Shown here: positions 1 to 64,000 of the stretch, one piece after another
How the letters are laid out: each line of letters begins with the position of its first letter
Numbering within the stretch: the first letter of the stretch is position 1
IMG/VR virus record: IMGVR_UViG_3300031951_000003
Location: 1 to 64,000 of that record
Length of the DNA stretch: 64,000 nucleotides
Strand: one strand, 5' to 3'
Position numbers and translations under genes: made by a program
Notes under the pieces: model-generated
What the model saw: only the letters and a program-made list of their open reading frames with translations
Told to the model about the DNA's origin: nothing
The model's database searches: none

Positions 1-347
1 GTTCCAGAAGTTCCTGACGAACCACTTGAACCAGATGAGCCAGATGTTCCACTTGTTCCAGATGAGCCAGATGTTCCACTTGTTCCAGATGAACCTGAAC
101 TTCCAGATGAACCTGATGTTCCGCTTGTTCCAGATGTTCCATTAGTTCCAGAAGTTCCTGACGAACCACTTGAACCAGATGAGCCAGATGTTCCACTTGT
201 TCCAGATGAGCCAGATGTTCCACTTGTTCCAGATGAACCTGAACTTCCAGATGAACCTGATGTTCCGCTTGTTCCAGATGTTCCATTAGTTCCAGAAGTT
301 CCTGACGAACCACTTGAACCAGATGAGCCAGATGTTCCACTTGTCCC
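1..347. repeat. 144-bp tandem repeat (about 2.4 copies) inside the collagen-like gene
   Basis: gttccagaagttcctgacgaacc starts at 1, 145 and 289. Confidence 0.85.
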
Positions 348-22161: not shown

Positions 22162-22175
22162 CAACTAGTTTTTCA

Positions 22176-39300: not shown

Positions 39301-41042
39301 AATGCCTCTGCTGATGCCATAAGAACTGCGATAATATTTCTAACTGTTGGTTTGAAGCCAATACCGTTTGTTCCACTCTCAATTTTTTCTAAGAGTTTCT
39401 TCGTAATTGAGTCTTCAAACTCTGAAAGTTTTTTATTTGCTTGGGTTTCAAGAAGTGCAATTATTTTGTCAAATCTGTTTTTACCCTCAAAAACAAAAAA
39501 AGGAGGTCTTACATCTTCTAATGTTGTTTGACCGTTTACATTTTTTGTTTCATATATTGGTGTTGTTAAGTTTTTTAGCTGGTCTTTCAATTGATTAATC
39601 TGCGTAGGATTCGGTTTCAAAATACCCGTTTGGATTTTTGTTGTTTCCTCCCAATTAATCTGACTTTCTGTAGGTGCTGGTTTGATACTAATTGTAGAAT
39701 ATACAATCGGGTTAGTAATTTTAGATGGTCCGTCATCCCCTAAAGTTGGATTTTTTGAAAGTTGTAAATTATATTCTGTAATAATTTTCTGTAACTGTGA
39801 TTCGGCCTCTAACTTAGCTTTCAAATCAATTTCTTTGAAGAAATACGCTCTCTCACCTGTTTTTAGAATAACTGGGTTAGGGTTCAAGTATCTATTGAAC
39901 CATGACGTTTGACCTCCCCTTACACCTTCAAAATAGTTTCTGAGTGAAGTTTTATAGTTTCGAATGTTAGTCAAAGGCGCAACTTCAACAGGGTTAAACT
40001 GACTAGCAACGTTTTGTTCAAATAACTCAAGAGCGTTTACAAATTGTGGGAATGAATACTCAGGGAAGTCAGGAGGTATCAAACCCTTGGATTTATATTC
40101 ACTATAAACTTCTCGTATTTTTTGATACCCTCTCTCTGCAGTTATTTGGACAGTATTCTCATTTTGTCTTCCGTCTGTGGCGGTAAGAAGTTTAGTTTGG
40201 GTTGCAGCATTTGTTTCCTGTGATTTCAGATTAGATTGTGGACCAACAGGGTTTGTTGTTACATTGAATTGTTGAGAATACATGTGCGGTGTCGCAATAA
40301 GATGTCCTACCGCAATCTCATTTAATATATTAAACTTATATCCTTTGAAATCTAAATCAATTTGATAATTCCCACTAAACGTGTTGAACCTGGCATTAAA
40401 GGTTTCCAAATTCAATTGATATCTTATTGCTTGACCATAAAAACCTTTGAGTGTTAGATAAAATGGTGGATATGGTAAGTTAAAGAAAGCCGCATAGGGT
40501 GAGTTATTACCCAACTGAAATAAGGCTCTTCCTTGAATATCCTCCAAAGAAATTCTCACACTTGGTATGAAGGACATGTTTGTGTCGATAGTGATTTGTG
40601 TAATCCCCAACAAACCGTTATCCAACACATCAGATAAATCATTTGGTCTATCGACTATATAAGCCTTAGTCCCATCTTTAGGAACAACAGTTCCCGTATA
40701 CATTTGATTGACCCCTTTAAACTTTGTTGTGTTGTCTCCAGTAATCTCATCATAATAACCTGTTCCTAAGAATGAATCTTTTGTCGGTTTTAAAAAATTC
40801 ATTTTCGCTATTGAAACAATTCTTACTCTATCTTCGGGTGATGCCCCCACAGCAAGTTTTGTTCTTGGTAACACTTCGGCTTCCAAGTTAGCATACATAA
40901 CTAAATTTTCGTGGTCGACTAATCTTTCTCTTATCTTTCCGAAAGCATCAATTGTTTTGTTTGGGTCGACTACGATAATGTTGTTATAATCAAACTCGAC
41001 AAGGATATTCCCACTGTTGTCCGCTTGTACATTACCTGCCAT
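33354..41042 (-). CDS. Giant baseplate hub protein (gp27/gpD-like barrel elements, lysozyme-like domain, IPT/TIG domain)
   Basis: 2562 aa. YKCSVVCLGNAIIQP...YLIDSINHSIQPGNFQTTFTGIR (hub C-terminal strands). PIITTFAPTIGNSGTIVQIKG...IRVVVP (IPT/TIG). Lies directly after the gpX-like gene. Confidence 0.65.
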   Translation of the reverse strand: MAGNVQADNSGNILVEFDYNNIIVVDPNKTIDAFGKIRERLVDHENLVMYANLEAEVLPRTKLAVGASPEDRVRIVSIAKMNFLKPTKDSFLGTGYYDEITGDNTTKFKGVNQMYTGTVVPKDGTKAYIVDRPNDLSDVLDNGLLGITQITIDTNMSFIPSVRISLEDIQGRALFQLGNNSPYAAFFNLPYPPFYLTLKGFYGQAIRYQLNLETFNARFNTFSGNYQIDLDFKGYKFNILNEIAVGHLIATPHMYSQQFNVTTNPVGPQSNLKSQETNAATQTKLLTATDGRQNENTVQITAERGYQKIREVYSEYKSKGLIPPDFPEYSFPQFVNALELFEQNVASQFNPVEVAPLTNIRNYKTSLRNYFEGVRGGQTSWFNRYLNPNPVILKTGERAYFFKEIDLKAKLEAESQLQKIITEYNLQLSKNPTLGDDGPSKITNPIVYSTISIKPAPTESQINWEETTKIQTGILKPNPTQINQLKDQLKNLTTPIYETKNVNGQTTLEDVRPPFFVFEGKNRFDKIIALLETQANKKLSEFEDSITKKLLEKIESGTNGIGFKPTVRNIIAVLMASAEAFIRLLDDVHTSAWALKYDDVRKKAILENPSSAPGSDTVDEIKITRQAIESSTGLKYAEIPVYPWPQFFVETPEDKKGRFQLKYIADPTVVELTGGWDYSKWPEVQFVEEYMRGLTMKFNPPLAPPPLDNQIETNLININAIEFPTVGVAYTNKEEIKFFYEIYERQLVTSRYSNYIRANQNQIDELIKLNTETEVNNIVKSLGLNSPYITMKLKNYAINSSNYLSFLENISNQGTGRAWQDFIRDFYVTPYLRNLTENSFAILNLDEQGKLPQSTAQSLALESLVTNSTNIPNVTDTIPFTDPQWNIKNLSNGDGSTLDEVYNTNRVLTIFDARKIISNFNNIYNVNEKRPVTNFSYLKNDNPNSTVTDLADNDVSLSSFYQTRTPIDFMATEGYYIHTPPTFSEDVPLENEFPRLTTTSMLNTPYFVNAIQNGVQNQRASLAYPYVQAGYLFINSLPLASLREKYKTQANGAQTDLDYIASCFKKFGAIHKLPYAWILKFGSIWHRYKVYKQSNTDILQTAWTNFNQVQNFSPIQNSPSQTYSFKYGTADREIALEKTDTTNVNLQVGFYPKVINDFYKFCIGYDVYKDYTNAEIQNTIKGGMKVYNYVQSNIQTQQEDKVLRLTTWSVLIPGGISSTEENCGTDSVTKQTIYFVVPSFGSSVNQTSDECIVNTNNQSSTVVNLNNNSAVYNGSVRTMWSAPNYGYFDGSAVVKPTPEQYVNRILPNTDEQSPFILLDSNEYSNIEEIFSVFDKKILDSFEQEFLNFCKPITDADTAPTNLGIGETSVSGDINFRNFQSLFKSLITVIPQLPATNETEYFNEVINLQYSNSQNTLRAFMEYDVLFKYGNPSNYKRRTLDSYLSHGGQPEVTDPIQFQPYVQGSLPSIGGSTTLTLSKTQNVDAWLALELEVGFSSIPSVEYSSNGSYITDFFIDNNIEFTLPNVTILSPIIKMYATYKLSNPNSTVAQFKNALQDLLNSEELLQSNFLNDLLAKLNKALPNQSQIPQGTINSVFTGQQSKVENWEVFKALNDKWIAGGDYKTKTLFEDILFLDRASRNIGQTVLLDIFELKNMIGRNSLNNAMSIFTLISGILIKNNFTVMNLPAYVNFYNIQDVDGTTIPQPEGSLEFANNMWGTFLNVDYRNSSPKMVCTYVGKPSQYLDLPKGNFRFRDDGFEMRRASENPLIENQEGKKDWATSNKCVGFNVDIGNRNQNIFYSFQVEQASGVATSESINTQLNIVNQSTGRNVATQNVSLYNLYKQRSYKCSVVCLGNAIIQPTMYFNLRHVPMFNGPYLIDSINHSIQPGNFQTTFTGIRQGIYDLPAIDSFLQSINQNLLTRLEAILKIKKDVPKPIANTQQQKTDEVVQVSNNTLDAQNSCTSKVDVITYQGYEVQSGTVTELTPQKFKEALEREIPGSDNTLLRFYIYAISYVNSFVKSSNTDAGKFVGYNHNFSLLSLDKNFQPIQTTNLYFNKKYCCVNVTSSGSSNSLPIAAFNSLKEYIGFMRSRLENNLERIRQLKLTKYYVCYWPKESVAENYYELNAESEFSTVIGTMQEAYVSAVQLGIIPKELAEKNDKEAKEIQKDTTVPTPPPPNPGQTCPPPIITTFAPTIGNSGTIVQIKGNCLDSTIAVFINGVQVEPRNITIVNPQTIRVVVPEVGTTVSTGNIKVDTFYGTFTTVSTFNFDPSISPSAASSPGSYVNNASNVTAAASGVITNPQQTGPNPLEIITQTKNTIGGDELLVVKISPNSGTWEMDDQPVMSYTLYTIKKGPNNSITRTVESRQNTRLVGFVSQDKQTFTCSRAALISAEFQGELEDYEGDEIEITTQIKILANNTSTQETVRQNYNFLIYVPPATPSTQTPPGSLVIVSNTNSGELPNFSGPDIYNIKKPTGGYVTLQFSCPNLIQKGEFELVLIPEIEIQSIVITNNPGTKYTNLVETSAKGRFQASVRYKSSSYTHIFPNTSDPVPINAGATSPPFTL

Positions 41043-41355
41043 AATAAAAGAATTGGTTGTCTATTGCCGCTTTATAATCTTGTAATGATGGTATCAATGG
41101 AAATGGAATACTCAAAATTGCACCATCGAAAATATTATTTTCTAAACCCCCAAACTGAGGGTTGGCTTGTAATATCAACCAACCAAAAAATGGTGAGTTG
41201 TAATATTCTTGTGAGACTCTATCTAACCTACTTCTACCAACTTTATAAATGTAAGCCTTATCGGTTGGTTTTGAAGGCAATTGAACATAAGGGACAACTG
41301 TTTGTTCTCCATTAATGATAAATTGACTATATCTATTCCAATATGGATACGCCAT
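41032..41355 (-). CDS. P2 gpX / LysM-like baseplate protein
   Basis: RLDRVSQEYYNSPFFGWLILQANP...GAILSIP. Confidence 0.75.
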   Translation of the reverse strand: MAYPYWNRYSQFIINGEQTVVPYVQLPSKPTDKAYIYKVGRSRLDRVSQEYYNSPFFGWLILQANPQFGGLENNIFDGAILSIPFPLIPSLQDYKAAIDNQFFYYGR

Positions 41356-44300
41356 TAGTTAAGTTTTGCTTTAGATATTAATGCCCCTGAAATGTCATCA
41401 TTCCAAGTGGCTTGGTCGTTCGAGCTGTTTGTTTGTGCAGCCAAACTTTTAATCCAAGATTTTTCAAGGTCGAACAAACTTGGGTCAGGAAACACGTTTT
41501 CCGTTGAAAATCCAAGGATTCTATTCTTTTTGGGGAATGGTGTATAGATTAAGAAATCTTTCAACTCATTCTTAGCCACACTATCCAAGAATCCTTTAGT
41601 TATGTTATTTTCCTCAATATATAAAGGTTTGGATTTTACAATCCAAAAGTCGTCAAAAATCTTACTAACGTCGGCTGTTGAATCTCCTATGAGTGCAGTG
41701 TTATTAATAACGTCTCCGATAATTGATTGTTTGAATGTTTGATATTTCTTGTCATCCAAAATGTCATCAGAGAATATCATATATTGTCTTTTGAAATTAC
41801 CGTTTGTGAACTCATCCTTTTTTGAAAAAGGTTCAAACACTACGTCGGTTGAAGGTGCTCCGTCTGCAATTCCATTCTCAGTTTTATAAACCATAACACC
41901 ATCATAAGTTAAATTGTCTTGAGAATAAACAAAAGAATTTGTCGCCCAAATAATATCATTAAATTCTGAAATATTATCTCTCACTTTTTGTAAATCAATC
42001 ACCAACTCATCCAAGGTATCAGTTGCAGAAGTGGATGAAACATCTACTTCAGATAATCCTGATATTTCATAAACCGTCACATCACCTTTCGCTGATTGGA
42101 ATCCATCGAAAGCAAAACCAGTCGTATAATCATAAGTAATTATGTTGGCTCTTGACCAACTTTGAATATATTGTGTCTCCAGTGTAACCAACTCTTGTGT
42201 TATTTGGGTTACGGCATTTTGGAAAACACCCCTCTTGTTTTTAATAACATTTGAATAGTTTGTCTTAATTGCATTTATTACTCTTGGAGTCAGATTTTTT
42301 GTGGTATCTGAAATGAAGTTGATAAATTGGTCATCATCATTTGTAATGTCTTCCTCCAAATTAGCAAATATCTGATTGAATCTGTTCTCAACATTATTTG
42401 GTTTTCCAAAAATGTATATTGATACTGGTGCGGTATCCACAGATGTTCCTCCGTATGTATAATTTCTCTCAGCCATCCATTGTTGCCTTACCGCGTTATT
42501 ATACTGAGATGTGATTGTAATTTGTTTGTTAACAACATTTTGAAAATAAGTTTGAGTTTGATTGACAAAATTTACCATGAAATCAGAATATGAAATAGTT
42601 CCGTTTTCACCAAAAGGTTGATTCGTTCTGTTTAGAATACTACCGATTGTTTGGTTATTATTTTGTCCATTATTTGGTGCCGCTTGATTAGCTGCAGGTG
42701 GTTTTGGTGGAACCGCCATTGCCAGAAACTCGTCATCTAAGACTTTCAAGAAATCCTCTTGTGCTGTAACATCGGCTCTGTCATCATATATCTCAGTATT
42801 CGCATAATAATTGAATGTCAAAGCGTTTTGTAATCTATCAACAGATTCTTTTAGACCGCTACCCCCAACGAACTTGAAATTCAAACTAACATTTGCAATC
42901 ATTGGTTGAACCCCTATACCCTCAGGATTTATGTCCAACTCCTCATATTGTAATGATAAACTCTCAGGTATGATTTTGGTATTATAAAAATCACCAATTC
43001 TCAAAACTAAAACTGGAGGTGCTCCAAATGTTGTGTTTACAGCATTGTTGTATTGTAACACAGGTGAACCATTGACTTCTTTGATTGTAGGAATTGTGTC
43101 ACCAGGTCTCATACACTGTTGTAAGAATGTTAACCTCGAGTTTAATCCCTCTGGTGTCATTGAGTGGAATGCCGGTGTGAAGAACTTTAGTTTGTCTTTT
43201 AGGTTGTCAAAAACCATAGGTGTTTCTGCCTTTATTGTCTCAAAGTAATCACACTCAGATAGAAGGGACCTAATAACCCTTTTAGTAATGTTATCTCTTC
43301 TTCTCCATTCTCTTGAAATCTCCTCTGTCTCAGTTGTTGTTACAACTGTATTAGACACTAATACATCGGTATATTGAGGTGTGGGAACTGGTTCAGGGGT
43401 GTTGTCGGTGGTATTATCTATGATATTATAGATATAAGCCCTCCTACAGGCCATTGCTCCTGGTGTGAAAACATCTTTAGCTTGAACTTGTATATCTCCA
43501 CCCACAACGCTACTATCGGTGTCAGTGCAATTATATGAGTTTCCCAAATTTTTAACAGATAAATCATATGGTTCAGGTCCTTCAAACTTTCTTGGTTGAG
43601 AAATGAAAGATTCTCCAAACCCTTTACCAGCTTGAACTAATAATCTCCCTTCACTAACGTATTGGGACAATTTAGGGTTTTTATTGAAAAATAATTGAGC
43701 AGACTCAATTCTTCTTTTTGATAACTCTACGTTATAACTTTGTGTTTGTGGTGCGGAACAACTTGAGTCAATTACGATTGTAATAGACCCTTTAGTTTGT
43801 TTTAATTTTGCAACTAAATCATCAATTAGTTTTTGAGCAACTTTAAAGTTAGTATCTACAACAACATCGAAAAAACTTTTTGTATCTGCACTTGTGTCAT
43901 ACTTTGCACGTTGACCATCATATATCAGTTTCTGCTGGTCATATCCTGTAACGTCCCCTTTTTTTGGATAATCATTTGCGAAATACAAACCAACATCTTT
44001 ATATTTTAATAGTTCACTTTCAGTGGGTCCAGGTTGACTGATGTCTTGACCTTGTCCACCATCAACCCCTGTTTGAATCTCAAGTTTAGACCATTCAATT
44101 TGTTCTCTTGTCAACTTCTTTGAGGTAATAGCTTCTTGTAATTGATACAAGTCATTCGGATTGATTGTGTAATACTTCTTAGCTAATTCATATAAATCGT
44201 ATTTCCTACATCCCGCAAAGAATGAATCTATAATACTATTAACTCTTGTTCTATTGGTTTCATTTGCAAGAACCTTGTTGACTATAACATTCAAAACTGA

Positions 44301-46376
44301 AGGATGGTCAACAACTATCTTCCAAGCCAAAGTCCCACCTCTACTTGTTGACTTATATGTATATATTGGCTCTGGTCTACCAAGGAACTCACTAGTGTTC
44401 CATGACGCAGATACGTTTTCATTAAAGGTAAGTCCATAAGGTGGGAACCACATAACCCTTCCTCCATTAGGTCCTCTCTCACAAACAGGTAAATCAGAGA
44501 CTGATGCTCCTGGTGTAGAAGAGGTTCTCCAAGCAAGATTTTCCAATGAGAACATGTATTTTTTTGCAAATGCGGTATTTGTAGTTCCTATTAAATTTGT
44601 AGAACTTTGACCACCTTCTTGTTTGTTTGGAGCAATGTTCAAATTATATGTGTTATCTAAAACTGAATCTACAAATCTTCTTCCATTAATTGTTATACCA
44701 TCTACCTTTTGTAAATCATTATATTGAAGATATGGAGTATCCTTAGCAAAAACTCTACAATATTCTGTTCCAACTTCCTGTCCTACAGCCCCTTCGTATC
44801 TATAAACTCTAGAACCCTTTGTCATTTCTTTATATCCGTCGTTGAAAACTTTGGATACTTGGTCTATGGCATTACCTACGTGTTGTAATCTTTTTCCTCC
44901 TTGTGGTTGACTGTCTATTAATCTTTGAGTGTCATCAAGAATTGAACCCTCTCTAAATCTTCTTTCAGTTGATTCTGTTGAGTTATAGGATGATGGTCTG
45001 AAATCTTCATCTTCTCTTGTCACCTCCCCACCAAGACCCACTCTCTTACCAGCATTTCCCTTGTATTTCGGTGAAACCCAAGTAAACCCACCTTCGATAC
45101 CACCACCGTCACTATACGTTGGTCCATTAGCACCTAATTTTACATCTTGACTAGGTCCTTCATAAAGTTGAGCTAACTCAGTTGGTCCAAAAACAGGAGA
45201 TTGTTGGACTACCCCAAACTCATTTACGGGTAATGCACCCGCAGGAGAAAAGACTTGTGATGGTTCTGATGTTCTTGAACCAACATAATAGTTACTATTG
45301 TCTGATAAACCACCAACAATTGCACCAGCGGCTCTGTCCAAGAAAGTTCTTTCGTAGTTCGGTTTGAATTTGTTAAAATCGATGTTGGCGAAAAGTCTAG
45401 ACTTTTGTCCTCCACCTGTGTTATTAAGGAAGAGTTGAGAACCTGATTGAGGGGCACCTAAAAGTCTATTGAAAAAGTTTCCAACAGCACTTCTTCTAAA
45501 TGCATTCTGTAGTTGTTGTATTGTTGTTGGCTGTCCTGAATTTATTGATGGGTCCCAATAAGAACCTGGGATTGGGGATACAGGTAATATACTTCCAGCA
45601 AGTCTGAGCGCAAAATCTGTTGCGGCTAATATTGGGTTACTTGGGGTTGTAATAGTCCAGTTTGGTTCCAACAATGGAACTCTTCCTGTTATTAAATTCA
45701 AAACATCGTTCCCGCTGTCAACATTGAATAGATTTACTCTACCTAATGTATTTTGTCTTATTTGTGCAGCAATTCTTTCCTCAAAAGATTTCCTCAAGGT
45801 TTGAGCTCCCAACTTGGCAATGAAGGAATCTTGACTCAATAACCCATTACTACCCAGTGGGTCTTTGGTTAATAGAATAGTAACAGGTCCATATAATGAA
45901 GGGACGAATGTTGTCGGGTAGGGTTGATTATTATATAATCTTGTTCCACCTATAACAAAATTAGGTTCAGTAATATATTCCCCACTGTCTAACAGAGCTT
46001 CAGAACCATTTGAATATGCGTTAACCGTTTTCCATCTCAACGATTCAGGTTCGGCCTGACCAAGTAATCTTGCATCTTGTTGACCTGGTCCATATTCTCC
46101 TTGATTTGACTTCGTATTAAGTAATCCTGTCGGGTCTGGTGCTTGTTTATATCCACCGTCTGACCCCCATTGGTTGAGAGGGTAGAGTCTGTTAGCAAAA
46201 CTAGGTTCATCAATAAGTTGGTCTGGACTGTCTTGAACAGAAGAATCGCTTTGGATATATTCCGTGTCTATCGGTTGTGACGGTCTATTAGGAGCCTTAG
46301 CATATGGTGTAAGGTTCCTTGTGAGTAACTTTTTTCTGAATCCTGAGGAAGATGAAAATTCTAATAAACTCGCCAT
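41355..46376 (-). CDS. Large tail-tube initiator-like protein (two gp48/CIS-tube-like domains flanking an OmpA-like domain)
   Basis: WFPPYGLTFNENVSASWN...FLGRPEPIYTY; FGAPPVLVLRIGDFYNTKII; IDSSCSAP..QSYNVELSKRRIES...GKGFGE. Follows the tape measure gene. Confidence 0.65.
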   Translation of the reverse strand: MASLLEFSSSSGFRKKLLTRNLTPYAKAPNRPSQPIDTEYIQSDSSVQDSPDQLIDEPSFANRLYPLNQWGSDGGYKQAPDPTGLLNTKSNQGEYGPGQQDARLLGQAEPESLRWKTVNAYSNGSEALLDSGEYITEPNFVIGGTRLYNNQPYPTTFVPSLYGPVTILLTKDPLGSNGLLSQDSFIAKLGAQTLRKSFEERIAAQIRQNTLGRVNLFNVDSGNDVLNLITGRVPLLEPNWTITTPSNPILAATDFALRLAGSILPVSPIPGSYWDPSINSGQPTTIQQLQNAFRRSAVGNFFNRLLGAPQSGSQLFLNNTGGGQKSRLFANIDFNKFKPNYERTFLDRAAGAIVGGLSDNSNYYVGSRTSEPSQVFSPAGALPVNEFGVVQQSPVFGPTELAQLYEGPSQDVKLGANGPTYSDGGGIEGGFTWVSPKYKGNAGKRVGLGGEVTREDEDFRPSSYNSTESTERRFREGSILDDTQRLIDSQPQGGKRLQHVGNAIDQVSKVFNDGYKEMTKGSRVYRYEGAVGQEVGTEYCRVFAKDTPYLQYNDLQKVDGITINGRRFVDSVLDNTYNLNIAPNKQEGGQSSTNLIGTTNTAFAKKYMFSLENLAWRTSSTPGASVSDLPVCERGPNGGRVMWFPPYGLTFNENVSASWNTSEFLGRPEPIYTYKSTSRGGTLAWKIVVDHPSVLNVIVNKVLANETNRTRVNSIIDSFFAGCRKYDLYELAKKYYTINPNDLYQLQEAITSKKLTREQIEWSKLEIQTGVDGGQGQDISQPGPTESELLKYKDVGLYFANDYPKKGDVTGYDQQKLIYDGQRAKYDTSADTKSFFDVVVDTNFKVAQKLIDDLVAKLKQTKGSITIVIDSSCSAPQTQSYNVELSKRRIESAQLFFNKNPKLSQYVSEGRLLVQAGKGFGESFISQPRKFEGPEPYDLSVKNLGNSYNCTDTDSSVVGGDIQVQAKDVFTPGAMACRRAYIYNIIDNTTDNTPEPVPTPQYTDVLVSNTVVTTTETEEISREWRRRDNITKRVIRSLLSECDYFETIKAETPMVFDNLKDKLKFFTPAFHSMTPEGLNSRLTFLQQCMRPGDTIPTIKEVNGSPVLQYNNAVNTTFGAPPVLVLRIGDFYNTKIIPESLSLQYEELDINPEGIGVQPMIANVSLNFKFVGGSGLKESVDRLQNALTFNYYANTEIYDDRADVTAQEDFLKVLDDEFLAMAVPPKPPAANQAAPNNGQNNNQTIGSILNRTNQPFGENGTISYSDFMVNFVNQTQTYFQNVVNKQITITSQYNNAVRQQWMAERNYTYGGTSVDTAPVSIYIFGKPNNVENRFNQIFANLEEDITNDDDQFINFISDTTKNLTPRVINAIKTNYSNVIKNKRGVFQNAVTQITQELVTLETQYIQSWSRANIITYDYTTGFAFDGFQSAKGDVTVYEISGLSEVDVSSTSATDTLDELVIDLQKVRDNISEFNDIIWATNSFVYSQDNLTYDGVMVYKTENGIADGAPSTDVVFEPFSKKDEFTNGNFKRQYMIFSDDILDDKKYQTFKQSIIGDVINNTALIGDSTADVSKIFDDFWIVKSKPLYIEENNITKGFLDSVAKNELKDFLIYTPFPKKNRILGFSTENVFPDPSLFDLEKSWIKSLAAQTNSSNDQATWNDDISGALISKAKLN

Positions 46377-46389
46377 CAATTATTTTTCT

Positions 46390-56524: not shown

Positions 56525-56920
56525 ATGGAAATTCAAAGAAATACAAAACTACAAGTAAGAAAAAGTTCAATTCACGGTTGGGGGGTTTTCGCATGTGAAG
56601 ACATAAACGAGGGTGAGGTTATTGAAGAGTGTCCGATTCTTAGATTACCTGTTCAAAGAGGAGAAACAAACTACACCTTAATTGACTATACATTTGTATT
56701 TCCAAAAGGAGAGAATTGGCAAAACCACGTTATTGCTCTTGGATATGGTTCACTATATAACCATTCCGAAAACTATAACGCAACATGGGAAGACGATTTG
56801 GACAAAGACATTTTAAGATTTAAAGCAACAAAACCAATTTCGAAAGATGAGGAAGTCACAACTTATTATGGTGATGAAAGTTATTGGTCTGACGGTAGAA
56901 GTCACATTGAAGTAAAATGA
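56525..56920 (+). CDS. SET-domain protein (putative protein lysine methyltransferase)
   Basis: SSIHGWGVFA...I.EGEVIEE, GSLYNHS..YN, ATKPISKDEEVTTYYG. Confidence 0.9.
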   Translation: MEIQRNTKLQVRKSSIHGWGVFACEDINEGEVIEECPILRLPVQRGETNYTLIDYTFVFPKGENWQNHVIALGYGSLYNHSENYNATWEDDLDKDILRFKATKPISKDEEVTTYYGDESYWSDGRSHIEVK

Positions 56921-58677
56921 GCTTATCAGAAATATCACTCGAGTCAAAAGCACTAACACTTCTTGAACAATATGAGGGGTATAACAATTATATCTTGGAA
57001 CTACAAAGGAAATCCCAAGTAAATAAAAAATTCTACCCAACAAGAAGTCAATCAGAATACATAATCAATAACCACGACAAACAACCCAAAGTTGCCAAAA
57101 AGTGGGTAATTTTAGACGCATATTTTGCACAGAAATTAGCTGACGACAAGATGTATACTGAAATCCCACAAAAAGTCTGGGTTGAAAAACTTCTAGCGGA
57201 GAAGGACAAAGCTTATCATATTTGGGGAAAGATTTGGGACTCTGAACAACTACATGATTTTTGGTTACCCAAGGCTTCTATAATAAAAGACAACACCGTT
57301 AAAGACGTTGTCATCGATTTTGAAAAATATTCAAACAGACCCCCGTTAAACCATCAAAAAGAATCCATTCAGAAACTGGTTGAAAATAAAAAATATATTT
57401 TGGCCGATGATATGGGTTTGGGTAAAACAACCTCAACTATAATTGCAGCCTTAGAAACAGGGGCTAAAAAGGTTTTAATCATATGTCCCGCAACTTTGAA
57501 GATAAACTGGAAGCGTGAAATTGAAAATTACTCTGACAGGACAATATACATAGCGGAGGGTAAAAACTTTAGCACAGAACACGACTTTGTAATCATAAAC
57601 TACGACATTCTAAAAAACTTCCATGACCCTAAAAAGAAAGATGATTCGCAAATTCTTAGAGCCAATTTTGATTTGGTTGTTATTGATGAAGCACACTATA
57701 TCAAAAATGCTCAAGCACAAAGAACCAAACTTATAAACGACTTCATAAAAAAAATTGACAGACTTTGGTTATTAACAGGAACACCGATGACATCAAGACC
57801 AATTGATTATTATAATTTATTGAGTCTCGTAGATTCCCCTGTTGCCAAGAACTGGATGGCCTACGTCATAAGATATTGCAGTGGATATCAATTCAAGGTC
57901 GGAGCAAGGAAAGTATGGAACGTAATGGGTGCGTCTAATTTAGATGAACTAAGGGATAGAACCTCGAATACAATCCTAAGGAGATTGAAAGAAGACGTTT
58001 TGGATTTACCTGAAAAAATTATCACACCTGTTTATCTCAGACTCAAATCAAAGGACTATGAAGAACTCATGGGGGAATATTATAATTGGTATGATAAAAA
58101 CCCCGACGAGTCAAAATCGTTAACAGTTCAATTTTCAAAACTTACAAAAGTTAGACAAGTTATTGCCAACGAGAAAATATCTCAAACAATAGAACTTGCC
58201 GAAAACATATTAGAGCAGGACAAAAAAGTTATCATATTTTGTAACTTCACAGATTCACTAAATCAAATTGTTCAACATTTTGGAAAAACTGCCGTCAAAG
58301 TTGATGGGTCAATGACAAAACAAGATAGACAATTTAGTGTTGACCAATTTCAAGAAAATGATAAAATAAAAGTTTTTGTCGGTAACATAAAGGCTGCGGG
58401 TGTTGGACTTACTTTGACTTCCGCAGAAGCGGTTATTATGAACGACTTATCATTCCTACCATCGGACCACTCTCAGGCTGAAGATAGGGCATACAGATTT
58501 GGACAAAAAAATAATGTGTTAGTCTATTATCCAATATTTGAAAACACAATCGAAGGCGCGATATATGACATACTTAATAATAAGAAGCAAGTCATCGCGA
58601 CCGTTATGGGTGACAATCAAAACATCGGTGACACTGCCGAAGAAATTCTGAAAAGAATAAACGAATTACGCCCTTAA
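56917..58677 (+). CDS. SNF2-family helicase/translocase (SMARCAL1/HARP-like)
   Basis: LADDMGLGKT, IDEAH, LTGTP, LRRLKEDV, GVGLTLT, QAEDRAYRFGQ. ATGA overlap with the SET gene. Confidence 0.92.
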   Translation: MSLSEISLESKALTLLEQYEGYNNYILELQRKSQVNKKFYPTRSQSEYIINNHDKQPKVAKKWVILDAYFAQKLADDKMYTEIPQKVWVEKLLAEKDKAYHIWGKIWDSEQLHDFWLPKASIIKDNTVKDVVIDFEKYSNRPPLNHQKESIQKLVENKKYILADDMGLGKTTSTIIAALETGAKKVLIICPATLKINWKREIENYSDRTIYIAEGKNFSTEHDFVIINYDILKNFHDPKKKDDSQILRANFDLVVIDEAHYIKNAQAQRTKLINDFIKKIDRLWLLTGTPMTSRPIDYYNLLSLVDSPVAKNWMAYVIRYCSGYQFKVGARKVWNVMGASNLDELRDRTSNTILRRLKEDVLDLPEKIITPVYLRLKSKDYEELMGEYYNWYDKNPDESKSLTVQFSKLTKVRQVIANEKISQTIELAENILEQDKKVIIFCNFTDSLNQIVQHFGKTAVKVDGSMTKQDRQFSVDQFQENDKIKVFVGNIKAAGVGLTLTSAEAVIMNDLSFLPSDHSQAEDRAYRFGQKNNVLVYYPIFENTIEGAIYDILNNKKQVIATVMGDNQNIGDTAEEILKRINELRP

Positions 58678-58682
58678 CATAG

Positions 58683-58895
58683 ATGGAGAAAGTAACTAAT
58701 CACCAAGGAGTTGAATTGAGAGTTGGTGATAGAATTAAAATTATATCAGACAAATTACATTCAAAATTACTAGCTAACGTTGACCTAAATGAAGAGGTTG
58801 TCATAACAAGTTTTTCAGAAAACGGAAAAATTATATATCATCATAATACATTAGCCCTACCAACCAACAGTGACATTTATGTTAAAATAAATTAA
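58683..58895 (+). CDS. Small hypothetical protein (SH3/KOW-like)
   Basis: 70-aa ORF containing LRVGDRIKI. Starts 5 nt after the SNF2 stop. Confidence 0.55.
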   Translation: MEKVTNHQGVELRVGDRIKIISDKLHSKLLANVDLNEEVVITSFSENGKIIYHHNTLALPTNSDIYVKIN

Positions 58896-58954: not shown

Positions 58955-60493
58955 ATGAAAAAAATAGAAGAAAGAATTCAACAAATTGAAAAACAAATTA
59001 CCGAAAACCATATCGAAACAGAAAAACAATTGTTGATTACAGAAATGAAAAAAATTGGAATAGAAAAACTACCCTATTCTTATTCAGCCCTCAAAGGATT
59101 CATCGACGCAGAAACGATGAATTTCCACTACAACAAACACTATAAGGGATATGTAGATAAATTAAATGCCGCCCTGTCAAAGAAAAAACATGGAGATTTA
59201 GACTTAGAAAAAATTGTCAAAAACATTAGTCGATACGACCAAGTAGTAAGGAACAACGCTGGAGGAGCATTCAATCACGCACTTTTTTGGAATATGTTGT
59301 CTCCAACACCAAAAAAATTAACAGGGGAATTGTATAAAAAAATTACCAAAGAATACGGTAGTTTCAATCTATTCAAAAAGAAATTTGAAACTGTTGCAAA
59401 GGATAGATTTGGCTCAGGTTGGGTATGGTTAATTTTAACCTCAAAAAATACTTTGAAAATAATGTCGACACCAAATCAAGACAATCCACTTATGAATGTT
59501 ATCGAAGGTGGAGGTTTCCCTCTATTAGGTTTGGACCTTTGGGAACACGCCTACTATTTGAAATACAGAAATAAGAGAGACGAATACATTTCAAATTTTT
59601 GGAAGGTGGTCAATTGGGATTTTGTTCAGAAACTTTATGAAATGAAAGTTGAAACAAAACTACTAGAGTCGAACAAATTTCAAGGAATAATTACTGAATC
59701 AAAAGAACCACAATTCTGTAATCCAAAAGAAGTATTGTTCTATAGAGACTTGATTAATAATTACGCAATCAAAAAAAGATATCAGGAGGGAGTATCCTAC
59801 GTTCTAAAAAAAGTATTTTCACATTTTTGGGTTGAGGGTAATACTGAAGAGATGTCAGGATTTTATGGTGTAGAATCACCCGAGGGTAGGTCTATACTCA
59901 ATAACCTTAATACAAATTTCAATACATTTTGTTTATTGGTAAAAGCAGTAAACAAACAGATTGAATTAATTGGAAGGTCAGAAAAGAAGTTTGATTTTTC
60001 AAAAAAAGAAAAAAGAACTCTAAAGGAAACAACTAGATTTATTTCAGCATTGGACCACTTCAGAAACGAAATCTTTACAGAGAATAACGAAGACTTTATC
60101 AATATAATCAAAGTCCTTAAAAAACTTTGGGATAGGGGTCAAAAGTCTGAAGACAACGCAATTAAAAAAATAGAAGACTATTTTGATGGTAATGCTAAAA
60201 TTGAAAAGATTGGTTCACATGGTGGAAAACAAGACGCCTTCAAAGGTATTGATGTAAATGTGATTTTAGATGGAAAAAAGTTTTCTGCACAGGTTAAACC
60301 ATTCTCTAATGTTTCAATAATCGAGGACAGAGTTAAACTTTTGGATACAGGAAATGTTAAGCATTACGAAGTCGATTGGTATATTTTTATTAATCCTAAA
60401 ACAAATAAGATACTTATATTCAAAAACGACCCTATAAGTGATAAAAACCAATATGTCTTCAACGTTAGTTCACTACTACACGAAATAGAATAA
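58955..60493 (+). CDS. sod: Fe/Mn superoxide dismutase fused to a C-terminal PD-(D/E)xK-like domain
   Basis: SOD motifs LPYSYSAL, HYNKHYKGY, NAGGAFNH, RFGSGW, NQDNP, LDLWEHAYYLKY. C-terminal GQKSED / GIDV / AQVKP. Confidence 0.88.
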   Translation: MKKIEERIQQIEKQITENHIETEKQLLITEMKKIGIEKLPYSYSALKGFIDAETMNFHYNKHYKGYVDKLNAALSKKKHGDLDLEKIVKNISRYDQVVRNNAGGAFNHALFWNMLSPTPKKLTGELYKKITKEYGSFNLFKKKFETVAKDRFGSGWVWLILTSKNTLKIMSTPNQDNPLMNVIEGGGFPLLGLDLWEHAYYLKYRNKRDEYISNFWKVVNWDFVQKLYEMKVETKLLESNKFQGIITESKEPQFCNPKEVLFYRDLINNYAIKKRYQEGVSYVLKKVFSHFWVEGNTEEMSGFYGVESPEGRSILNNLNTNFNTFCLLVKAVNKQIELIGRSEKKFDFSKKEKRTLKETTRFISALDHFRNEIFTENNEDFINIIKVLKKLWDRGQKSEDNAIKKIEDYFDGNAKIEKIGSHGGKQDAFKGIDVNVILDGKKFSAQVKPFSNVSIIEDRVKLLDTGNVKHYEVDWYIFINPKTNKILIFKNDPISDKNQYVFNVSSLLHEIE

Positions 60494-60499
60494 TAAAGA

Positions 60500-60506
60500 T
60501 ATTTAT
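60500..60506 (+). promoter_or_regulatory. TATTTAT upstream element
   Basis: 5 nt before the gp13-like ATG, on the + strand like the gene. Confidence 0.65.
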
Positions 60507-60511
60507 TTGAT

Positions 60512-61639
60512 ATGGCAGCACTACCAGAACCAGAAAGAAGTAAAATTTATACAAGAGTCAAACACTTGTTGGGAGCACCCTTAAGAAGTGTAGAATTAGA
60601 AGACGAAATGATGGACTCGCTAATGGAATTATCTATTGGTGATTATGAAGAATATATTCTACAATGGCTAATCGATTCACAATGGGTTAACTTAGTAAAC
60701 CTCAATATGAATGAAAAGTCTGTTGCCAGAGCTTTGGTTACAAGGACAATGGACTTCGAACAACAATTTGCATATTCGTATTCTAAGATTGTTGGACTTC
60801 AGACCGTAGGACCATGGGTCTTGAAGAAAGATTATTTCATAATTGAAAAGAATGTTCAGACATACGAAATACCAGCCAACAGAGAAGTCAATGAACTTCT
60901 TTGGTTTAGTAATCAGGCTTGGACAGCATTCGGACTTGGAGGTCTTGGTGGATTTGGATTCGGTGGTATAGGTTTGGGTGCCAATGAAGCAGGATACGCT
61001 CAGATGGGATACCAAGGTTCTTATTTTATGATGTCTGGTTTTGATTACCTCATCAGAATGCAAGAAGCAAATATCTTGAATAGAATTCTCGGTGGTTCTA
61101 TGACATATAGGATTACCGCATTACCTGATGGTAAAAAGTTGATACACTTGATGAATACCCCTGGTGGTAAATTTAACTGGGCTAATTTCAACATGTATGC
61201 TGGTAAAGCGGTTTGGTATTGGTATTATGATGTAACACCAGACAGTAGAGCTGATTGTCTTAAAAACAATCCTGACATTATCAAACTACCGACTGACGTT
61301 CCTCTTGAATCCTTGAGTTGGGAAGATATCAATGTTCCTGGACAACAATGGATAAGAAGATGGTTTACAGCATATTGTAAAGAAACCTTAGCAAGAGTGA
61401 GAGGTAAATACAGTGGGAATCTTAAGACACCTGATTCTGAAATTACAATGGATTACACCAGTCTTTTAACTGAAGCCAAGGATGAAAAATCTAAACTGAT
61501 GGAAGAATTGACGGGCGCTGAAGGATGGCTTACAAGACTAAGACCTGAAAAGGTTATGGAAAGAGAAGCACAAATTGCTGAAAATTTAAATAAACAAATG
61601 AAATTCAGAGCAATGCCTCGTCAAATCTACGTAATCTAA
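60512..61639 (+). CDS. Neck protein, T4 gp13-like (head-tail adaptor)
   Basis: RVKHLLGAPLRSVELEDE, WIRRWFTAYCKETLARVRGKY, AKDEKSKL. Confidence 0.78.
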   Translation: MAALPEPERSKIYTRVKHLLGAPLRSVELEDEMMDSLMELSIGDYEEYILQWLIDSQWVNLVNLNMNEKSVARALVTRTMDFEQQFAYSYSKIVGLQTVGPWVLKKDYFIIEKNVQTYEIPANREVNELLWFSNQAWTAFGLGGLGGFGFGGIGLGANEAGYAQMGYQGSYFMMSGFDYLIRMQEANILNRILGGSMTYRITALPDGKKLIHLMNTPGGKFNWANFNMYAGKAVWYWYYDVTPDSRADCLKNNPDIIKLPTDVPLESLSWEDINVPGQQWIRRWFTAYCKETLARVRGKYSGNLKTPDSEITMDYTSLLTEAKDEKSKLMEELTGAEGWLTRLRPEKVMEREAQIAENLNKQMKFRAMPRQIYVI

Positions 61640-61640
61640 T

Positions 61641-61976
61641 ATGGCAATAGTAAAATCAATCCCATCCAAAAGAATTATTAATGGTCATGCAATCAATACA
61701 TCTGAACTTTCAGTTGTATCCGAATTGGATTATAGAACCAACGGTGAATTTTGTATAATTGTTAGAGGAATCCCACAATCATTTTTAGTCTTAGATTCAA
61801 AAACAACAGACCATGTTGTAGTCAAAGCTATGACTATGGTAACAGTAAGACCCGATGTCGGAAAAATTGACGAGGAATGGGACGAAATTGTATTAGATAA
61901 GTTTGCCTGTGTAGAATTCCAATACGTTGGAGGTAATTGGTATATTCTTTCTTCAGACGGTCTTAAGCAATCCTAA
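61641..61976 (+). CDS. Small beta-rich hypothetical (probably structural) protein
   Basis: 111-aa ORF starting 1 nt after the gp13-like stop. Confidence 0.65.
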   Translation: MAIVKSIPSKRIINGHAINTSELSVVSELDYRTNGEFCIIVRGIPQSFLVLDSKTTDHVVVKAMTMVTVRPDVGKIDEEWDEIVLDKFACVEFQYVGGNWYILSSDGLKQS

Positions 61977-64000
61977 TTTAGTTTCCCAATTTTCTTCGGC
62001 TAATTCATACATGTAATTAGGGTCAAGTCCACGTTTTTCCCAATAAGATAGTTCATCCGATGTTATATCTAAAACATCTTCTTGAAGTTTATCTTGGTCT
62101 CCATCTTCGAATGGCATACCGTTGATTAGTTCACATTGTTCTCCCGTAAAAATTCCCCTTTCTTCAGGATTCGTAACAAGTAGTTGGTCACGAACGTCTT
62201 GTTTATAAACAACAAGTAAAGGTTCAATTCTTTTGTTGAAAGTTACAATTGCTCTTGGAACATTATATTCACCTGTCAGATTGGGGTTATTTTCTAATAT
62301 GTTTGCATCCAACATGTAACAATTAATCTGAACACTGTCTCCCTTTTTTTGGACATCACCATGAGAGGCTTTGACACCATTATTAACATACATAATAACA
62401 TCTCCCAAGTTTACACCTATCCCCGTTTGAAGTGCAAGTTCCATGTGTGCCATACGGGACATTGTATTCCCTGCTTTAGTCTTTTGGGTTAATCTTTTTT
62501 TATAATCCTCGAGTGTTAACTTAACTTTCGCTCTTTGTGCAATCTTTGAAAGGGGAATTTGTTGGTTGAATATTTTTTGAAGATACTCATAATAATATTC
62601 CACGAAGTCTTTACCCTTACCCTCCAAAAGTAATTTGATACCTTTATCCAAAAACTCCTCGATATACAATGGAAGTTTTTTTGATTTGATGGAATTGCCA
62701 GTCAATTTAATCTTTCCTTTGGCGTCCATGACCGCATAATTTTTTCTGGCAAGATTAATACATGAAGGCCACACACCATCAGTATCGAGAGCCATCTCAC
62801 CCCTCATGAATATGTCATTGTATTCTGCAACGTCCGCTTCAGGACCTTTATAAACTTTTCCCGCCTTTACCTTCCAATTCAACCCACGACCAACATAGTG
62901 ATGACTTTCCACATCATCGGGACTGGAGAAGTTTACACCGTCTGTATCCATTACAAGTGGGACATAACCCTTAGACATAAAAAATTTAATCATTTGTCTC
63001 AGATATTGTCTACCTGTGCAAGTAATCTGTTCCCCCATATACATGTCACCCCAAGCAAAAACTTGTGGAGCAGACAAAGCACCAAACATGGAGTTGATGA
63101 ATATTTTGATGGGCAATTGTTTGTTTGAATATGATGCGGACTTTTGTGGGTCAGACTTTTCAAACTCTTCCGCAAGTTGTTTGTAACGAATACGTGTGTC
63201 ACGGAAATACTTCAACATTCCTTTCATCGCACCTGTCACATCACAATCAGGAAATACATCATGCACAAGCTGAATAGAGGGGTATAGAGAGGAGAAGTCG
63301 AGCTTTAATACATTCTTACTATAACCAACCTTAAGTAGTCGAGAAAGACCTCCTACGAAGTCTGTCTTCGATTGTTTGGCAGGGATTGCCAGTCCGTGTT
63401 TGTATGACCAAGCAAGCATCAGCATTTTCCAAAGAGTCGCAGTTCCCATGGTTGATACTCTTTCGTAAGTCGTAGGAATCATAGATGCAAGTAGAAATGA
63501 CGCTTGGTTAAATTCTTTATCCACAGCCAAGGTTTCTTCCAAGTCATCATCAAGATATCTCTCAACAAGATTGTCACCAGTAGTTTTGATATAAATGTCA
63601 TTTCTTTTTTCACATACCTCATCAATCTTTGGGTCCAAACCAACCTTCTTGTAATTACCGTTTTTAATATTTAACCAATATTCTTCCTTAGCGGCATAAA
63701 ATTTTCCAATGTCCGTGTGTTCGATATAAACACGGTCAGGAGCCTCTTTATTAATAAACTTTGTGATATACTTCAAACCAGCCGCCTTGATATTTGAATT
63801 GATGGCTTGAGCTCTTCGAACAGCATGAATTATATCGATTACATTATATCCCCAAATTGATGTTTGAAGAAAATCTTCGACTTCATTTGCTAATTTGAGA
63901 ATCGTATCTTTTCTTGTGTATGAGTGTTGGGGATGTAAGGATTTAATCGCCTTCCTCATATCTAAACCAAGTCTTTGACCTCTTTCGAATATCCAGTGCC
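61953..64000 (-). CDS. Family B DNA polymerase (5' end outside the window)
   Basis: LDFSSLYPSI, KIFINSMFG, MDTDG, ExoIII YLDDD. The frame stays open upstream of the track start (HWIFERGQRLGLDM). Confidence 0.93.
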   Translation of the reverse strand, partial: HWIFERGQRLGLDMRKAIKSLHPQHSYTRKDTILKLANEVEDFLQTSIWGYNVIDIIHAVRRAQAINSNIKAAGLKYITKFINKEAPDRVYIEHTDIGKFYAAKEEYWLNIKNGNYKKVGLDPKIDEVCEKRNDIYIKTTGDNLVERYLDDDLEETLAVDKEFNQASFLLASMIPTTYERVSTMGTATLWKMLMLAWSYKHGLAIPAKQSKTDFVGGLSRLLKVGYSKNVLKLDFSSLYPSIQLVHDVFPDCDVTGAMKGMLKYFRDTRIRYKQLAEEFEKSDPQKSASYSNKQLPIKIFINSMFGALSAPQVFAWGDMYMGEQITCTGRQYLRQMIKFFMSKGYVPLVMDTDGVNFSSPDDVESHHYVGRGLNWKVKAGKVYKGPEADVAEYNDIFMRGEMALDTDGVWPSCINLARKNYAVMDAKGKIKLTGNSIKSKKLPLYIEEFLDKGIKLLLEGKGKDFVEYYYEYLQKIFNQQIPLSKIAQRAKVKLTLEDYKKRLTQKTKAGNTMSRMAHMELALQTGIGVNLGDVIMYVNNGVKASHGDVQKKGDSVQINCYMLDANILENNPNLTGEYNVPRAIVTFNKRIEPLLVVYKQDVRDQLLVTNPEERGIFTGEQCELINGMPFEDGDQDKLQEDVLDITSDELSYWEKRGLDPNYMYELAEENWETKLGLLKTV

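Follow-up and report, generated by a model that had tools for sequence, protein, structure and literature searches.

A single phage gene was found to encode a complete Mn-type superoxide dismutase (SOD) joined, in one polypeptide, to a C-terminal module that carries a predicted nuclease domain of the PD-(D/E)xK superfamily. The gene occupies positions 58955-60493 (plus strand) of the window, by which we mean the whole 64,000-nucleotide (nt) stretch analyzed, positions 1-64,000 of IMGVR_UViG_3300031951_000003, a record of 105.6 kb in IMG/VR. It is a single open reading frame (ORF) of 512 amino acids (aa), with an ATG start and 0 internal stops. The chain has four parts, namely a leader, the complete Mn-type SOD, a helical domain of about 160 aa and a nuclease domain of about 120 aa. 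Taken alone, this architectural part of our explanation is one that we hold with high confidence. To our knowledge, Fe/Mn SODs are almost always stand-alone enzymes.

Close relatives of the protein are encoded at 126 loci in IMG/VR. Eighty of these were retrieved and examined, and all counts out of 80 given below refer to them. The parts of the gene are listed here, with structural comments from AlphaFold2 (AF2) models and their predicted local distance difference test scores (pLDDT).

58955..60493, plus strand: fusion gene, 512 aa plus stop; intact ORF, complete in 80/80 IMG/VR loci
58955..59059, plus strand: helical leader, aa 1-35; one long helix (residues 2-32) in AF2, pLDDT 53-67
59060..59650, plus strand: Fe/Mn SOD, Mn-type, aa 36-232; PF00081 and PF02777 above cut-offs
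59126-59128, 59276-59278, 59534-59536 and 59546-59548, plus strand: codons of the SOD ligands H58, H108, D194 and H198
59651..60136, plus strand: helical domain of the module, aa 233-394; AF2 helices, pLDDT mostly 80-97
60137..60490, plus strand: predicted PD-(D/E)xK nuclease domain, aa 395-512
60149-60151, 60233-60235, 60251-60253, 60290-60292 and 60296-60298, plus strand: codons of the nuclease-site residues E399, D427, D433, Q446 and K448

An initial annotation of this DNA had placed an intact SOD at about 59065-59640, followed by about 280 further residues. The SOD is indeed intact, its limits being refined by the 35-residue helical leader in front of it and by an end near aa 232 (nt 59650). 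The 280 residues are likewise present, but they form two domains, helical (aa 233-394) and nuclease (aa 395-512), and not one. The three C-terminal strings that had been read from them, WDRGQKSEDNAI, GGKQDAFKGIDV and KFSAQVKPF, were all found in the ORF translation. The AF2 model of the full-length protein had a predicted template modeling score (pTM) of 0.56, and the inter-domain geometry is not usable from it.

The two domains are joined in a genuine single chain

A trivial explanation for such a gene would be that separate SOD and nuclease genes were wrongly joined by assembly or by gene calling. Four sequencing runs were aligned to a 2.1-kb stretch to check the junction between the SOD and the C-terminal part (about nt 59640). 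This stretch recurred almost verbatim (at least 96% of sampled words) in about 19 DNA runs from lakes and fresh water, which represent at least 14 studies. The junction was crossed by contigs from three independent studies (X11, 59411-60136; X12, 59536-60506; X19, 59119-59760) with 0 differences, and indels were reported nowhere. Neither a stop nor a misassembly between the domains, either of which the initial annotation had named as fatal to its claim, was therefore present.

The survey of domain architecture in IMG/VR led to the same result. A full-length ORF with the SOD motif was present in 80/80 loci, with 512 aa in 76 and 517 aa in 4, and in the same gene order; among these loci, the ORF was also uninterrupted in four contigs of 317-321 kb. 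A protein search returned over 160 clusters (90% identity), with few exceptions of exactly 512 aa and with both SOD domains. Entries of 283, 333 and 343 aa were contig-edge fragments whose apparent starts are internal Met codons, M230 and M170 among them.

The gene is thus a genuine single-chain fusion and misassembly is excluded; the probability left to an artefact is negligible, since it would have to account for the error-free junctions from three studies, the 80/80 loci and the more than 160 homolog clusters, and nothing speaks for it except a weak 'joint' from 59602 to 60525. This joint, represented by one contig in each of three runs, skips 922 nt and links the end of the SOD to the beginning of the following gene. 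Because its flank is only 19-20 nt, we judged it probably spurious, either a conserved word of a relative or an artefact. If real, it would represent a variant without the module.

The SOD domain is complete and of the Mn type

Both Pfam domains of Fe/Mn SODs were recognized far above their gathering scores: Sod_Fe_N (PF00081) at aa 36-116 (E 1e-22, 80.8 bits versus a cut-off of 27) and Sod_Fe_C (PF02777) at aa 123-226 (E 1.4e-39, 134.7 bits versus 20.9). The protein has all four metal ligands (H58, H108, D194, H198), together with H62, Y66, Q175, W196 and E197 as gateway and outer-sphere residues and with the pair G103-G104. Each of these residues was invariant in an alignment of 33 fused homologs with identities as low as 44%. 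These findings bear out the earlier description of an intact SOD with four ligands. A GG pair together with a Gln in the C-domain is the usual criterion for a Mn-type or cambialistic SOD; G103-G104 and Q175 fit it, in agreement with the type first proposed.

The C-terminal module is predicted to end in a PD-(D/E)xK fold

The initial annotation had proposed that the region after the SOD is a nuclease of the PD-(D/E)xK type. An AF2 model of aa 228-512, built on 29 homologs (pLDDT 82.6, pTM 0.72), consists of a helical domain, then a long helix and then a beta-rich domain. In an exhaustive structural comparison with 48,161 PDB chains, aa 394-512 aligned to PD-(D/E)xK nucleases. The leading matches, with their scores, were NhoI (6.9), I-Ssp6803I (6.6), Hjc (6.3 and 5.9), DpnI (5.6) and the N-domain of Eco15I (5.4), followed in the ranking by tRNA-splicing endonucleases and PvuII; every top match was a PD-(D/E)xK nuclease. 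Foldseek searches of PDB, AFDB clusters, BFVD and the ESM Atlas were concordant, returning I-Ssp6803I, Hjc and models labeled 'PD(D/E)XK endonuclease' or PDDEXK_5. The model and the structural searches thus agree on this fold, so that the other outcome named as fatal in the initial annotation, a C-terminal region that fails to model as PD-(D/E)xK, did not arise.

The predicted active site was found where this fold would place it. On the model, which contains the core alpha-beta-beta-beta-alpha-beta fold of the superfamily, E399 lies in the helix (379-409) that precedes beta1, D433 opens strand 432-438 (beta2) and Q446 and K448 are in strand 441-449 (beta3). Judged by position on the model, and not by residue-level superposition in three dimensions, E399, D433 and Q446-x-K448 would have the canonical PD-(D/E)xK arrangement. 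Searching 1.84 billion representative proteins by profile yielded 230 relatives of the module, one per 50%-identity cluster, and motif residues were counted in 110 representatives spanning the motif region, taken from the 150 best of these 230. Of the 110, 106 kept G395, 106 E399, 109 D427, 106 G431, 110 D433, 107 Q446, 109 K448 and 107 Y471. The E...D...QxK pattern, kept at 96-100%, is therefore more than a chance resemblance. No positions in the module family as a whole are better conserved than these motif residues, which argues for a live nuclease active site.

Sequence comparisons were much less specific. Searching Pfam with the fusion protein gave no match to a nuclease family, the C-terminal half matching only Pox_polyA_pol_N (E 0.16), and the same half gave nothing significant in PHROGs (phrog_34249, E 0.01 over 29 residues). 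No match to the module was obtained with tblastn against 50,697 phage records (INPHARED). Sequence-profile matches in the PDB (alignments A1 and A2) were to RPL27, a retinol-binding protein and a lectin, and were rejected as chance. When 68 diverse members were compared with Pfam, the matches were all sub-threshold and recurred to the PD-(D/E)xK clan: DUF6602 (three), Mrr_cat_2 (three), RE_EcoO109I (two), PDDEXK_5, NERD, Mrr_cat and Card1_endonuc. PHROGs searches with 10 distant family members and with other fusions gave nothing informative, and the single distant proteins P0127 and P0219, used as locus-search queries, gave no confirmed loci.

We therefore accept membership of the PD-(D/E)xK superfamily at the level of modeled fold and motif, and do not accept membership of Mrr or of any other named family. 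The first description of the module as Mrr-like or type I/IIG was not sustained. The QxK variant of the Mrr-like motif is present (Q446-V-K448), but the fusion protein itself has no Mrr match, and Mrr_cat_2 was sub-threshold in 3/68 members (best E 0.0013). The context differs as well from that of Mrr-like or type IV enzymes (PF04471, PF13156), the gene lying in a phage replication module and the helical N-domain having no match to a known reader domain.

For the helical domain (aa 233-394), structural searches gave no convincing fold match. A likeness to RNase III and TssK was rejected as weak. The Swiss-Prot fold search returned only RNase III models, with a template modeling (TM) score of at most 0.22 and a probability of at most 0.38, which we consider noise, and the best AFDB match, an 'HNH domain protein' (TM 0.27, root-mean-square deviation 18 Å), was not used. 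C255, S313, N316, N321, C326 and N333 are conserved in this domain in the family alignment.

The helical and nuclease domains together apparently represent an unnamed family restricted to viruses: the nearest clusters were 89-100% viral, and the language-model neighbors were viral clusters, some members of which carry RE_MjaI, Mrr_cat, Hjc or RE_TaqI. Many relatives are proteins of 245-300 aa without a SOD. The module was also seen at the C-terminus of P0209 (1109 aa, L005 8001-11330), P0263 (829 aa, L170), P0191 (583 aa) and P0226 (597 aa), the N-terminal parts of which have no Pfam or PHROG match, and a 1113-aa marine-phage protein in BFVD is similar to these large proteins. The module is thus a recurrent fusion partner.

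Stand-alone modules in sister phages point to a later arrival of the SOD

The fusion gene lies in a conserved slot, the neighbors of which are listed here (PolB, family B DNA polymerase).

56917..58677, plus strand: SNF2-family helicase, 586 aa; Pfam SNF2-rel_dom and Helicase_C, phrog_62; upstream of the fusion in 80/80 loci
58683..58895, plus strand: 70-aa ORF between helicase and fusion; no Pfam or PHROG match; detectable in 20/80 loci
60512..61639, plus strand: 375-aa gene downstream; weak match to phrog_211 (head-tail adaptor), E 1.1e-9; in 80/80 loci
61641..61976, plus strand: 111-aa gene; no Pfam or PHROG match; in 78/80 loci
61953..63959, minus strand: PolB; Pfam DNA_pol_B, phrog_262; in 78/80 loci

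The 111-aa gene and PolB converge, their 3' ends overlapping by 24 nt (61953-61976). The 70-aa ORF, judged by its detectability in 20/80 loci, is poorly conserved or fast-evolving.

Four related loci carry the module without a SOD in the same slot. At L003, a helicase 72% identical to that of the window is followed, 12 nt on, by a 290-aa stand-alone module and then by an ortholog of the 375-aa gene (60% identity). At L002 the flanks are 78-88% and 82% identical to those of the window, and the stand-alone module (287 aa) is only 35% identical to that of the fusion. Neither locus has a separate ORF at the position of the 70-aa ORF, the module starting 12-13 nt after the helicase stop. L168 and L007 show the same pattern, with stop codons just upstream of the start of the module at L007. 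The SNF2 helicase is upstream in L002, L003 and L168, and orthologs of the 375-aa gene follow the module in L002 (82%), L003 (60%) and L007. These stand-alone modules indicate that the order SNF2 helicase, module, 375-aa gene, 111-aa gene and convergent PolB is ancestral. On this comparative evidence, the module is the older resident of the locus and the SOD a later arrival in one sub-lineage. The order of events first suggested, in which an antioxidant enzyme gained a nuclease, is thereby reversed.

The origin of the SOD could be traced further. The nearest cellular SODs are 47-55% identical to it, and 72 of 79 are from Bacteroidota. In a tree of the SOD domain, the ten fused phage SODs were monophyletic on a long stem (SH-aLRT 100), the deepest member having 44-47% overall identity. 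Since all ten fall in one clade, the phylogeny indicates a single capture: a SOD of Bacteroidota type was grafted once, in frame, onto the 5' end of the module gene. About the first 17 residues of the leader weakly resemble the N-termini of the stand-alone module proteins P0140 and P0124, and in a test of leader homology 2/38 stand-alone proteins matched in register above the 99th percentile of shuffled sequences. This weakly suggests an insertion of the SOD after an N-terminal helix that the module already had. No convincing direct DNA repeats that could represent an insertion scar were found flanking the SOD segment. The module tree does not separate fused from genuine stand-alone forms but intermingles them, some 'stand-alone' rows being fragments; this pattern and the L002 case point to subsequent losses of the SOD or to cassette exchange between related phages.

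The SNF2 helicase orthologs of L002 (3-3983) and L168 (333-3197) are broken by large in-frame inserts. That of L002 has 1326 aa versus 586 aa, with two inserts of about 360 aa exactly at Walker A (GLGK/TTST) and at the DEAH motif (DE/AH), and that of L168 has a Pfam Intein_splicing match. The inserts are probably inteins, which the helicase of the window does not have.

Phage, host and genome-wide context

The identical fusion gene is present in contigs of 317-321 kb, one of which (G001, 317,210 bp) is 100% complete by CheckV. The window encodes a tail sheath, a baseplate wedge, ribonucleotide reductase, a DnaB-type helicase, the SNF2 helicase and PolB, and the SNF2 helicase is at most 32.5% identical to that of any isolate. 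The phage belongs to a globally distributed lineage of freshwater jumbo myoviruses of about 320 kb without close cultured relatives.

A Shine-Dalgarno core (GGAG, GAGG or AGGA at -20 to -4) was found at 0/32 ORF starts (5456-63959) versus a background of 8.9%, and the leaders of these 32 ORFs are A-rich (45% A). Missing Shine-Dalgarno sequences and A-rich leaders are typical of Bacteroidota and their phages. Combined with the predominance of Bacteroidota among the nearest SODs, the 0/32 count makes the host probably a Bacteroidota bacterium. A scan for sigma-70 promoters showed no enrichment over shuffled sequences. The best 'cellular' SOD match is in a metagenome-assembled genome labeled Polynucleobacter (L008, CAYVBV010000039.1); this 15.9-kb contig carries a phage SNF2 helicase followed by a 517-aa fusion of SOD and module. 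Almost certainly, phage DNA was binned here with a bacterial genome, and the contig, as it stands, is not to be read as evidence on the host.

In G001 the fusion lies at about 55-57 kb and encodes the only SOD of this complete genome. Thioredoxin and glutaredoxin are encoded at about 272 kb, and no peroxiredoxin was found in G001. Methyltransferases of the N6/N4 and Dam-like kinds are encoded near 255 and 277 kb; a C5 methyltransferase was not found in this genome. Among the neighbors of the nuclease (the helicase, the 70-, 375- and 111-aa genes and PolB) there is no methyltransferase, the nearest being about 200 kb away.

Elsewhere in the window, an ORF of at least 1805 aa (3-5417, minus strand) runs off the end and consists almost entirely of Gly-Ser/Thr-Ser triplets (S 40%, G 31%, T 18%) after an ordinary N-terminus (MATTRITDLPIV...). 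This collagen-like repeat protein is probably a fiber, and its ORF accounts for a jump in GC content to 44-48% and for long spurious ORFs on the opposite strand. Further giant ORFs of the structural region, all on the minus strand, are at 33354-41042 (2562 aa), 41355-46379 (1674 aa) and 17107-22164 (1685 aa).

Possible function of the fusion protein

The explanation that we favor tentatively, giving it close to an even chance as a whole statement with its inferred mechanism, is that the protein is a bifunctional enzyme of the replication module, a nuclease with a tethered SOD for defense against reactive oxygen species (ROS). By analogy, the module would be a metal-dependent DNA endonuclease in phage replication or recombination that works beside the SNF2 helicase; it would debranch replication or recombination intermediates and possibly degrade host DNA. 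The SOD half would be an active superoxide scavenger, the sole one in the phage, in ROS defense. The fusion would guarantee co-expression with the replication genes, and the obligate SOD dimer would hold two nuclease modules together.

A role in replication is suggested by the SNF2 helicase, which directly precedes the module in every close relative. Moreover, the Pfam families Endonuclease VII, RuvC and Hjc (PF01870) had no match in the complete genome G001; a genome without a classical resolvase, combined with the SNF2 and PolB flanks, was counted for an endonuclease of the replication module.

Several points weigh against this explanation. One of its steps, that the fusion would tether the SOD to the DNA-bound nuclease and hence to replicating phage DNA, is purely conjectural. 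No sequence profile, either in Pfam (68 members scanned) or among PDB profiles, reached a curated nuclease family, and a complex prediction for a module homodimer scored 0.00, which is evidence neither way. In the single metatranscriptome compared (X20), no fusion transcript was seen, the only matches being 127 nt of the following gene and 37 nt of a SOD-like sequence that belongs to another organism. More distant members of the module family do not adjoin a SNF2 helicase. A second, distant nuclease paralog is encoded outside the window (G001:C1:174769-176136, minus strand, corresponding to L173 2270-3637, minus strand); this 455-aa protein matches the A2 profile with E 1.4e-8 and, with GETAE ... 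GNVIDMVFGVD ... LVQVK, keeps the G-x3-E, D-x3-G-x-D, Q-x-K signature. Finally, the module has diverged in amino-acid sequence 2-3.5 times as much as the SOD, the helicase or the 375-aa gene (in the close clade, 64-78% identity versus 82-94%), and at L002 the module has 35% identity between flanks that are about 80% identical. Such fast evolution and the replacement at L002 would be expected less of a housekeeping resolvase than of a nuclease driven by specificity or conflict.

The alternative that survives best, which we consider doubtful but worth serious attention, is an offensive, restriction-like nuclease, near to what the initial annotation had in mind, cutting host or competitor DNA by sequence or by modification for salvage of nucleotides, shut-off of the host or superinfection exclusion. 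The phage DNA would be shielded by its own methyltransferases, and the SOD would be a co-expressed passenger. This is consistent with the language-model neighbors that carry RE_MjaI, RE_TaqI and Mrr_cat, with the QxK motif, with top fold matches that include restriction and homing enzymes, and with the module being the fastest-evolving part of the locus, replaced like a cassette between near-identical flanks. The N6/N4 and Dam-like methyltransferases of the genome and the second paralog would also fit, as would the location of distant members next to genes of nucleotide supply, thioredoxin and thymidine kinase. Yet the methyltransferases do not adjoin the nuclease, no Pfam restriction family was matched over threshold, and the slot is fixed in every relative, unlike that of homing endonucleases or of mobile restriction-modification (R-M) cassettes. 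There was also no sign of positive selection. At unsaturated synonymous sites, the ratio of nonsynonymous to synonymous substitution rates (dN/dS) ranged from 0.008 to 0.037 in the SOD, from 0.02 to 0.13 in the helical domain and from 0.06 to 0.23 in the nuclease domain; as far as sequences can tell, both halves of the fusion are maintained by purifying selection.

The surroundings of the distant members are as follows. At L169 (633-1758), a stand-alone module of a distant clade overlaps the start of a thioredoxin gene, and at L171 (7001-10106) and L172 the module is near an enzyme of the PolyA_pol family and a thymidine kinase; in place of a SNF2 helicase, these neighbors belong to nucleotide supply or redox.

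Improbable, in our view, is a tighter coupling, in which the two halves would form one functional unit and not merely share a promoter. The nuclease module would then anchor the only SOD of the phage on its replicating DNA as a site-directed antioxidant against damage by superoxide and Fenton chemistry, in sunlit oxic lake water, or the redox state sensed at the SOD or at C255 and C326 would gate the nuclease and so couple DNA processing to oxidative stress. A DNA-targeted antioxidant or a ROS-gated nuclease would, if true, be a new principle in virus biology.

Two further explanations are very unlikely. The PD-(D/E)xK domain might be a catalytically silent anchor that binds DNA or protein and positions the SOD, or another partner in the stand-alone forms. 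Folds of this type do sometimes serve as binding domains. Yet inactive derivatives normally lose their catalytic residues, and in the module family, counted over 48-110 diverse members, conservation is 100% for D433 and K448, 97% for Q446 and 93-96% for E399. With equally little in its favor, the protein might be packaged in the virion and injected, so that SOD and nuclease arrive with the DNA and protect it or attack the host at entry. Some giant eukaryotic viruses package SODs, and the 375-aa gene downstream weakly matches a head-tail adaptor PHROG. However, the fusion gene lies between the SNF2 helicase and PolB and matches no structural-protein family. The 'co-delivery' of the two domains proposed in the initial annotation thus found no backing, nothing pointing to packaging or injection of a protein encoded in the replication module. 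The roles that this annotation had offered, namely protection of incoming DNA, exclusion of competitors or degradation of host DNA, are conjectural.

Comparison with known systems

Both domains belong to known superfamilies; what is new is the domain architecture and the unnamed, virus-only PD-(D/E)xK family. A conserved and abundant chimera of SOD and nuclease in a widespread lineage of jumbo phages is an unexpected architecture, and the family, with about 230 clusters at 50% identity, has no Pfam or PHROG model. A homologous 501-aa fusion in UniProt and BFVD is labeled only 'superoxide dismutase [uncultured Caudovirales phage]', an annotation that hides the nuclease half. Full-text literature searches returned no description of a SOD-nuclease fusion or of the module family. 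Sister phages with and without a SOD at the same locus provide a natural experiment on the value of ROS defense to a phage, which also bears on whether physical coupling to DNA enzymes matters.

A role in ROS defense has been proposed for the SODs of freshwater phages (Kavagutti et al. 2019, PMC6802176). Those stand-alone SODs (PMC6802176) resemble the present one in habitat and in the presumed benefit, superoxide scavenging during infection. They differ in that no INPHARED record carries the C-terminal module, for which reason the SOD matches in INPHARED are not this fusion. The Mn SODs of Bacteroidota type (SodA-like; PF00081 and PF02777) share with it both complete domains, the ligands and the second-sphere residues. 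Unlike the bacterial enzymes, the phage SOD is one part of a 512-aa protein, preceded by a 35-aa helical leader and followed by the 280-aa nuclease module, and it forms a long-stemmed phage clade of its own.

PD-(D/E)xK nucleases encoded in phage replication modules include T7 endonuclease I (gp3) and the VRR-NUC proteins paired with phage SNF2 helicases. By analogy, the present module would be another such nuclease, here directly downstream of a SNF2 helicase; the analogy is one of context, T7 endonuclease I and VRR-NUC having no sequence or specific structural match to the module. Three better-known kinds of system were considered and found no support: a type II R-M system, for want of a cognate methyltransferase beside the nuclease; the Hjc family, no Pfam Hjc match being found anywhere in G001; and a free-standing homing endonuclease, since 80/80 loci and the stand-alone relatives share one slot and PDDEXK_5 was matched by 1/68 members (E 0.029).

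Compared with Hjc, NhoI, the N-domain of Eco15I, I-Ssp6803I (PDDEXK_5), DpnI and PvuII, the module has 6-12% sequence identity and no profile-level match. It differs from the minimal PD-(D/E)xK nucleases in having Q, and not D or E, before the Lys, an additional near-invariant residue, D427, six positions before the Asp of beta2 (109/110), a mostly beta C-terminal half and a unique helical N-domain of 160 aa.

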